A DNA stretch of 64,000 bases from Felis catus (lineage: Eukaryota), in the NCBI RefSeq assembly GCF_018350175.1, contig NC_058380.1, forward strand, positions 91,450,001 through 91,514,000, read 5' to 3'. A program made the translations under genes and the position numbers. The notes under the pieces are model-generated. The model saw nothing but the letters and a program-made list of their open reading frames with translations, searched no databases and was not told the DNA's origin. Of the stretch, positions 38,901 through 41,900 are shown one piece after another (positions within the stretch are counted from its first letter, which is position 1; each line of letters opens with the position of its first letter).

Positions 38901-41900
38901 GCTGCGAAGTAACTCCTGCCCCACTATGTCCATCCACTTGGACATCTGGCCAGCCCTGGCTCCCTGCAGGCTTAGGTTCCATCCTTAGGGGGCTCCTTGT
39001 CTGATGTTCTCGGTACTTGGAAGCCCCCTGTCCCCATCTGCAGCAGGAGCCTCCTCCCAAGGGCTGTCAGCTACCCTGGGGAGCTGGGGTGGGTCTCGGG
39101 GTCAGGAGCAGTGGAGGCAGCCACGATTTCAGTGACATTTGAGACATTAATGTCGCTGCTGGAAATGGGACAGATGATTATCACAGTGGAGCTGGAGGTG
39201 GTGGTGGAAGACAGATGGGGGGCCAGGGGGGGAAGTCCGGGAGATGCCTGTACGTGTAGGATGTCTGACCACCTGCTGAGGAGCGACCCCTCTCATCTTC
39301 TGAGAGGCCTCACCCACCTCCAGAATAGAGTCCCGCCCACCTCCAGAATAGAGTCCCGCCCACCTCTAGAAGACAATCCCGCCCCCCCCACCTCTAGAAG
39401 AGAGACCTGCCCCTCCTCCAGAAGAGCCCCGCCCTCCTTTTGAAGAGACCCCAGCCACCTCTAGAAGACAGTCCCGCCCGCCTGTAGAAGAGAAACCCGC
39501 CCTCTTGCTGAGAGTCCCACCCTCCTCTAGAAGAGAGTCCCGCCCCTCCTCCAGAAGGGAATCCTGCCCCCACCTCTAGAAGAGTCTGCCCACCTCTTGA
39601 GGAGAGTCCCCGCCCACCTCTTGAAGACAATCCCCGCCCACCTCTTGAAGACAATCCCCGCCCACCTCTTGAAGAGCGGCCCTGTCTTCCAGATGTTGGT
39701 GTTGCCCACGCAGCCCCGCGGTGGGTCGGTGATGTTCTCCTTCTCCAGGAGTTCGTGCACCGCCTGGGCCACCACGCCGACGGCGTCACTGATGTGGGCC
39801 GACTCGTTCTTGCCATTGATGAGCTGCAGTCCGATGATGCCTGGGGCGAGTGGGGTGGGCTCAGTGTCCGTGGGGGACCCCTGCCCACCGGGACCCAGAG
39901 AGGTCCAGCACTCACCGTCCGGGGCGTAGCGCAGGGCGTTCCCCGAGATCTCTCGCTCCCCCACCAGCCACACATACCCGGAGCCTGTCATGTTCAGCAT
40001 CGCGGCTGCGCGGTACACGGTGGCGGCGTCGTCCTCGCTGTGGGGCAGAGGGGGGTGACGGGCCCGGCCAACCCTCCAGCCCTTCCCCGCCGGACCTGTG
40101 CCTGTGGATGCTCTGGGTTCACAGGTCCTCCTCTGGAGTGTGGCCCTGGCCCCGCCCCCAGCCCCTCCCTCCCCTGGAAAGAGGCCTGGAGACACTGCAG
40201 AGGTGACAGGCCCAGCACCCCCCCACCTCCAGCCCTTCCTGGGTCCAGTGATGCTGCAGAGTGGACAGTCCCCGGTACCCCCCTAGCTGGGCCCACTGAC
40301 CCTACGCAGGTGACCGGTCCCAGCCTGCATCGCCAGCCCGCACCTGGACCGGGAGAACACCCCCCCACACACACCCCCCGACAGCAGAGGTGACGGGTGG
40401 AGGGTGGGGATGGGGTGACGGGGCCCAGACCCCCAGAGCTTCCCAGGCCTCTCTTGCTGGCCCTCCCCCCTTGGTGAGCAGGGTCACGGCGCCCCAGATG
40501 GTGACGGATCATTGTTGATTGCTTACTTGCTCCCGGTACCAGGCACTGCTCTGAGCGCGTTACACGGACTCTCTTACTTAATTCTCACGGTATCCCTACG
40601 AGACGGACATCAGTACTATCCCTGTGTCAGGAGGGGAAACCAAGGCACCCAAAGCACACGAGTGACGGTAATGGCAGACCCGGGTCTGTGTCTGGACAGT
40701 CACCCCAGGGCCCATGCTCCTGTGACCTCCTGGGTAGGCTGCGCACATTCTGGTTCTCCAAGTCCACACATGCGAGACGAGGGGCTGGGGACTCTCCAGG
40801 CGGGTCAGATGTTGGTGGGACCCAACGTCTGGGAACTGCCCCTAGCGCTGCAGCGGAAGCTGCCGGAGGGGGCCGGCAGCTGCCGCACTCGTTATGCTGT
40901 GTGTCCTGCCGCCTAGAACCGGGCCATCACGGGGGACAGTGCAGGTGGTCCTGAGCTCTCGGGATGCCCTTACAGGCGAGCCCCTGTGCACCTGATCCCC
41001 TGGGGGTCTCCTGGTCAGGACGAGGATCCTGGGCCCGGTGGGGCCATGGGGGCCACGGGGCGGGGGAGTGCGGAACCACCGCTTGCTTCTCTGCCGGACT
41101 GGACTCGGCCCCACACAGGCCTAGACCACACCTGGCACTTTGCCTCTCTAACACGTGGGCACGGGGCACAGAGAGGCTGGACAGACTGAGCGTTGGGTTA
41201 TTTTCACAATGGCTGACTCTGGAAACCCAGGTGGCCCGAGGCTCCCTAAGGGGTCTGCCCTCGATTTTCTCAAGAACGAGCCAAGACCTTCAGTGTTCGC
41301 TCTACGTGACATGCTCCTCAGACATCAGCAACGCAAACAGAGGTACTCCAGGCAGCCCCGTACCCAAGGCCAAAGAAGAATATCGAGCCAAGATGACCCG
41401 GAAAGACCAGCACTGTGTGTGGAGGGGCACCCGCGCCCCCTGTCAGTGGTGCTCGCAAAACCTGGCAGGGAAGCTCATCTGCTTGACACAGCGCAGGTCT
41501 GTGACTTTTGACTTAGCGGAACGAGCACACGCCTGTGCTCGTATCTGTGTACATCGGTATCGCCGGTAAAAAGGTGTGCACAAAATCCTGATCGATCCAT
41601 CAAAACCGTTTGAGGGAAGTAATCGGCCCCAGAGGAGACAATCTCCGGAAGATAGGAATGAAAAGTCTGAGGAACGACTTCTCCGCCCTCCACAGGAAAT
41701 GGCTCAGAAATGAAGACTGGCTGAATGAGGTCTCTCTGCAAAGTGCTCTCAACAGCCCTCAAGAAGGAGGAGCCAGTGTGTGGGGGGAGGTCCCAGGGTC
41801 AGGAAGGCCTGTAGGTGCCGCTCCTGGGGAGCTGGGAGTGCTGGGGGCCGGGCTAGCCTCTGTCGTGGGACTGGGGCGGCTCTGCTCCAAGGAGCCCCGT

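Follow-up and report, generated by a model that had tools for sequence, protein, structure and literature searches.

When one exon is followed by several identical 5' splice sites in tandem, which of them is used, and what would the protein become if the choice were not confined to one? The GRIN1 gene of Felis catus raises this question. It lies on the minus strand of the window (the 64-kb stretch of DNA analysed throughout), and a sequence-only reading had described four in-frame GAG/GTGGGC donors behind one of its exons (the slash marks the exon-intron junction), proposing that either insertion isoforms of GluN1 are made or a strong mechanism enforces use of the first donor.

The exon concerned ends AAG AG/GT, so that the codon for K322 is whole and that for R323 is split. 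A sequence search of the PDB with the peptide encoded by the exon returned GluN1 chains from many NMDA-receptor structures with 100% identity over 57 residues (E ~1e-33), and rat and human GluN1 are both 100% identical to it. The gene is identified by this search; Pfam gave nothing useful for single GRIN1 exon peptides. The complete match to residues 266-322 also bears out the earlier placement of Lys322 at the junction. GRIN1 is an essential gene. The acceptor AG of the intron is at 38323-38322, and the next exon starts at 38321. The gene features are as follows.

39666..39840, minus strand: GRIN1 exon for GluN1 residues 266-322 and the first two bases of the R323 codon (strand reading and translation)
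38322..39665, minus strand: GRIN1 intron, 1344 nt counted from the canonical donor (strand reading)
38275..38321, minus strand: start of the next GRIN1 exon as read, with the G of R323 first; a masked stretch of Ns at 38071-38274 lies inside this exon (strand reading)

We listed all GT dinucleotides on the minus strand with their sequence context, and GAG/GTGGGC is found with exon ends at 39666, 39642, 39618 and 39594, at a spacing of exactly 24 nt. The claim of four tandem, in-frame donors uninterrupted by a stop codon is thus upheld by the strand reading and by translation, and the U1-pairing nonamer is indeed the same at all four. Donors 1-3 match through +11 (GTGGGCGGGGA), and donor 4 departs after +6. 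Besides these four, two further copies of the 9-mer are present with exon ends at 39364 and 39341, and other donor-like GTs occur in the more diverged sequence beyond.

39660..39668, minus strand: donor 1, the canonical GAG/GTGGGC, exon end 39666 (strand reading, GT listing)
39636..39644, minus strand: donor 2, same 9-mer, exon end 39642, +24 nt, predicted insertion RWAGIVFK (GT listing, translation)
39612..39620, minus strand: donor 3, same 9-mer, exon end 39618, +48 nt (GT listing, translation)
39588..39596, minus strand: donor 4, same 9-mer, exon end 39594, +72 nt, the third unit being predicted to add RWAGTLLK (GT listing, translation)
39314..39574, minus strand: later donor-like GTs in diverged units, exon ends 39574, 39521, 39459, 39392, 39364, 39341, 39318 and 39314 (GT listing, translation)

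The frame that reads through donor 1 meets its first stop 47 codons after K322, so donors 1-4 are all in frame and stop-free, and translation returns the insertions that had been predicted after Lys322 for donors 2, 3 and 4, namely RWAGIVFK, (RWAGIVFK)2 and (RWAGIVFK)2RWAGTLLK. The helix at this point may contact the GluN2 amino-terminal domain. The later donor-like sites behave differently: splicing from +92, +145, +274, +302, +325 or +352 would change the frame, whereas +207 and +348 keep it but come after stop codons. An open frame of this kind is not rare. Given a chance of about 1/3 for a unit length that is a multiple of three and of about 0.32 for 24 stop-free codons, roughly one array in 10 would be both in frame and stop-free, and this property alone is unremarkable.

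With one 9-mer common to donors 1-4, any U1-based score is equal for all four. The predicted U1 duplex of GAG/GTGGGC is -8.9 kcal/mol, as compared with -9.1 and -9.3 for the authentic donors of two neighbouring exons, -9.3 for the F7 site UGG/GUGGGU and -11.8 for the consensus site. By this model the four are ordinary intermediate donors, on a par with real GRIN1 donors and below consensus strength. We also considered whether RNA secondary structure masks donors 2-4 and rejected the idea, as the predicted unpaired probabilities (0.40, 0.30, 0.41 and 0.16 for donors 1, 2, 3 and 4) do not separate donors 1-3.

The repeated donors are part of a minisatellite that begins inside the exon.

39313..39676, minus strand: 24-nt minisatellite of 15.7 copies, first monomer across the exon-intron junction, G-rich on the RNA strand (Tandem Repeats Finder)

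Tandem Repeats Finder reports this array with a period of 24 nt, 74% matches and a score of 263, and places the last 11 exon bases within it; no other tandem array in the window is as large. The first two units have the same sequence, from which unit 3 departs at 3 of 24 positions. Units 1 and 2 both end with TCTTCAAGAG, the sequence of the last 10 exon bases; the array thus has the exon-intron junction as its first monomer, and the junction is part of the youngest duplications. The recurrence of GAG/GTGGGC is therefore a matter of tandem duplication and not of chance. The remaining units range from 18 to 28 nt, vary in sequence and mostly carry CTAGAG or CTGGAG in place of the exon's CAAGAG; the variable length of these older units speaks against the repeat being under coding constraint. 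Two identical 23-nt units occupy the distal end (39363-39318), so that recent duplication is found at both ends and not just beside the exon. Identical adjacent units at both ends suggest recent turnover. The distal units (39340-39560) also read CTCTTCTAG/AG/GTGGG, such that a pyrimidine tract resembling that of a 3' splice site and a TAG stand right before a donor-like GT. Elsewhere in the window there are other short, G+C-rich tandem duplications, at 47344-47482 (71 nt x1.9, 95% matches) and 34276-34345 (28 nt x2.4, 92%).

On the RNA strand, G makes up 43% of the array, with 27 runs of three or more Gs in 370 nt, as compared with 23 in the other 974 nt of the intron. Of these runs, six fall in the first 70 nt after donor 1, where a G-run enhancer would be positioned. 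At the DNA level, the 370 nt at 39296-39665 contain 10 GC-box-like GGGCGG motifs against 0.39 expected from the window, and factors of the Sp/KLF type could bind the array, to judge from these motifs. There are no strict G-quadruplex motifs in the array. The core GGGCAGGANG of hypervariable minisatellites (PMC2408603) is matched seven times with at most two mismatches against 2.4 expected, and we rejected likeness to this Jeffreys core as the origin of the array, the enrichment being weak.

Minisatellites in which the first monomer spans the exon-intron boundary and the donor is repeated in the intron are a described class, with F7 intron 7, IFI6, CBS, LMNB2 and PDGFA as human members (Borensztajn et al. 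2006, PMC1557585). In F7 intron 7 the unit is 37 bp and present in 5-9 copies, and only the most upstream of the identical UGG/gugggu donors is used, with the same pattern in the several cell types tested; the downstream copies become functional once the upstream ones are mutated, do not compete even when improved to a consensus value of 91, and mutation of the G triplets leaves donor choice unchanged (PMC1557585). The authentic donor alone is likewise used at the LMNB2 (100 bp) and PDGFA (81 bp) repeats, while in IFI6 (6-16) and CBS, as summarised in the same article, the first donor and two downstream copies are used (PMC1557585). IFI6 gives three mRNAs because two downstream repeat units also serve as donors, and the predominant form, of 130 residues, is made from the first donor (PMC4526556); the CBS repeat is the 31-bp c.1444_1467+7 VNTR (PMC2630376).

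The cat array shares the structural features by which the F7 IVS7 type is recognised: intronic units within the range of 10-100 bp abut the exon, the exon end is contained in the monomer, and an identical donor is repeated downstream. It is thus of the F7 intron 7 type, a member of a described class and not new in kind. The two have in common a boundary-spanning first monomer, several strictly identical G-rich donors facing one acceptor, and G triplets in each unit. They differ in the donor sequence (UGG/gugggu in F7, GAG/gugggc in GRIN1), in the monomer (37 bp with 4 exon bases in F7, 24 bp with about 10 in GRIN1) and in the reading frame; moreover, first-donor-only usage is an experimental result in F7, whereas for GRIN1 it is a prediction. 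The IFI6 intron 2 minisatellite (Turri et al. 1995, as cited in PMC1557585 and PMC4526556) is similar in that the repeat supplies multiple donors, and its ladder of three mRNA species, which comes from use of downstream units, is the model for the idea of GRIN1 isoforms. In these accounts, however, IFI6 encodes a small interferon-induced protein and has about 25 pseudo-sites and three documented mRNAs, whereas the GRIN1 array adjoins a highly constrained receptor domain. The 31-bp VNTR of CBS exon 13/intron 13 (Yang 2000 and Lievers 2001, as cited in PMC1557585 and PMC2630376) also repeats the donor at the exon/intron border; its copy number is polymorphic, and a cited title ties the VNTR to enzyme activity. 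As described there, its monomer has 24 exon and 7 intron bases in 15-20 copies, unlike the 24-nt GRIN1 unit with about 10 exon bases. The GRIN1 spacing of 24 nt is shorter both than the 31 bp of CBS, for which the citing articles give use of downstream copies, and than the 37 bp of F7, where the downstream copies are silent.

Work on model substrates bears on the choice between such sites. When two strong identical donors compete, complex E has U1 at both of them (Hodson et al. 2012, PMC3413131); the intron-proximal (downstream) site is then used almost exclusively at a spacing of at least 45 nt, and usage is mixed when the spacing is less than about 30 nt (PMC3413131). G-rich elements between competing donors favour the intron-distal site (PMC1919487, PMC1877881), and the M2 enhancer of PLP/DM20 acts through hnRNP H/F (PMC1919487). 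PLP/DM20 (PMC1919487) and the ISRE reporters (PMC1877881) resemble GRIN1 in having G triplets between competing donors, with the upstream donor being favoured in both and hnRNP H/F acting in PLP/DM20; these are single elements, however, whereas in GRIN1 the repeat copies the donor as well.

From these observations it is probable that the canonical donor at 39666 dominates and that donors 2-4 are pseudo-sites used little or not at all, with a joint share of under about 10%. The anatomy of the array, the identity of the sites, their frame and the density of G runs are direct observations, from which we infer which donor is used and why. A plausible sequence of events is that the donor and the 10 exon bases before it were duplicated into the intron by unequal exchange or by slippage during replication, with the youngest copies, two of them identical, coming to lie beside the exon and the older, diverged ones deeper in the intron. 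Donor 1 would be the first to follow the exon proper, with its enhancers, in keeping with exon definition or with the 'oriented scanning' seen in F7, and the 'exon' upstream of donors 2-4 would be G-run-rich repeat. The GGG and GGGG runs in every stretch between donor 1 and the later donors may also favour the intron-distal site. Finally, use of a far-downstream donor would add 24 residues to a protein with a 100% conserved exon, or shift its frame, a presumed reason for such use to be avoided.

Two published results stand against parts of this account. The spacing rule from model substrates (PMC3413131) predicts use of donors 2-4, and the absence of an effect of G-triplet mutations in F7 (PMC1557585) counts against G runs as the explanation for dominance of donor 1. 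The earlier proposal that hnRNP H/F acts on the G runs is accordingly only partly sustained: G-rich elements do favour the intron-distal site, and the array has 27 runs in 370 nt, but the F7 G-triplet mutants are unchanged. Taken naively, the model-substrate rule would let donors 3, 4 or deeper frameshifting sites win, with 24 added residues or a lost frame. The perfect conservation of the exon and the essential nature of GRIN1 rule out such sites as the main outcome, and natural arrays would, by analogy, evidently follow the behaviour of F7. The choice posed at the outset between insertion isoforms and an enforced first donor is a reasonable one, since there are natural examples of both; neither is new, though, and no unknown 'strong mechanism' is needed.

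How probable, then, are the alternatives to dominance of donor 1? An isoform ladder, in which donors 2-4 are used at 10% or more to give GluN1 lengthened by 8, 16 or 24 residues after K322, to a degree set by VNTR copy number as in IFI6, would draw on four identical 9-mers that are in frame and stop-free, so that nonsense-mediated decay would not remove its products. IFI6 and CBS, each with two downstream repeat donors in use, are consistent with it, and so are model substrates, with their preference for the intron-proximal site and their mixed usage of closely spaced donors (PMC3413131). Yet the exon is 100% identical to that of rat and human GluN1, a sign of extreme constraint, and the insertion would split the GPLFK/RVLMSS segment in its middle. 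Of the five natural cases described, three use the first donor alone (PMC1557585), the intervening G runs work in favour of the upstream donor, and an open frame is expected by chance in about 10% of such arrays. We regard the ladder as quite unlikely. It is unlikely, too, that donors 2-4 account for at least 5% of brain GRIN1 mRNA, lengthening the amino-terminal domain of GluN1 by 8, 16 or 24 residues behind K322 in amounts that vary with the VNTR allele, which would make a receptor series tuned by copy number.

The repeated donors could instead be incidental to an array whose main role is that of a G-run intronic splicing enhancer, strengthening a donor of intermediate quality, or of an element at the DNA level such as a GC-box cluster or a recombination-prone minisatellite. 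The 27 G runs and the 10 GGGCGG motifs in 370 nt (0.39 expected of the latter) are what such roles would call for, G-rich intronic enhancers are bound by hnRNP H/F (PMC1919487), and the seven matches to the GGGCAGGANG core exceed the 2.4 expected at up to two mismatches; but this likeness is weak, and the free drift of unit length and sequence (18-28 nt, 74% matches) looks neutral. We consider it distinctly improbable that this is the main role of the array, and such a role is compatible with dominance of donor 1, which it does not exclude. That the two perfect copies have simply been mis-counted in the assembly is hardly credible. Perfect tandem copies are prone to this error, but the perfectly periodic stretch is just about 69 nt and so shorter than ordinary reads. 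In addition, a fraction of 0.99 of the sampled words of 38275-40100 is present in six runs from five studies (24 runs were listed), which is no proof of copy number and argues weakly against a gross artefact.

GRIN1 is thereby added as a further host of a donor-repeating boundary minisatellite, an arrangement already known from F7, IFI6, CBS, LMNB2 and PDGFA. If the first donor alone is used, the cat gene would be a second clean natural test case beside F7 of how the spliceosome chooses among identical donors, at a spacing of 24 nt that falls in the range giving mixed usage in model substrates. By analogy with F7, mutation of donor 1 in cat GRIN1 would probably lead to rescue at +24 nt and not to exon skipping. 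If downstream donors are used, a polymorphic repeat would write in-frame insertions into a highly conserved neuronal receptor, and use of the frameshifting donors would lower GRIN1 expression; either would matter to feline neurogenetics and to the annotation of GRIN1 in the cat.

At the other end of the intron, the minus strand carries CCG/GTAAGT at 38341-38352, a near-consensus donor 28 nt upstream of the acceptor AG at 38323-38322. It is too close to pair with the acceptor of its own intron, and may be either a U1-binding decoy or irrelevant.
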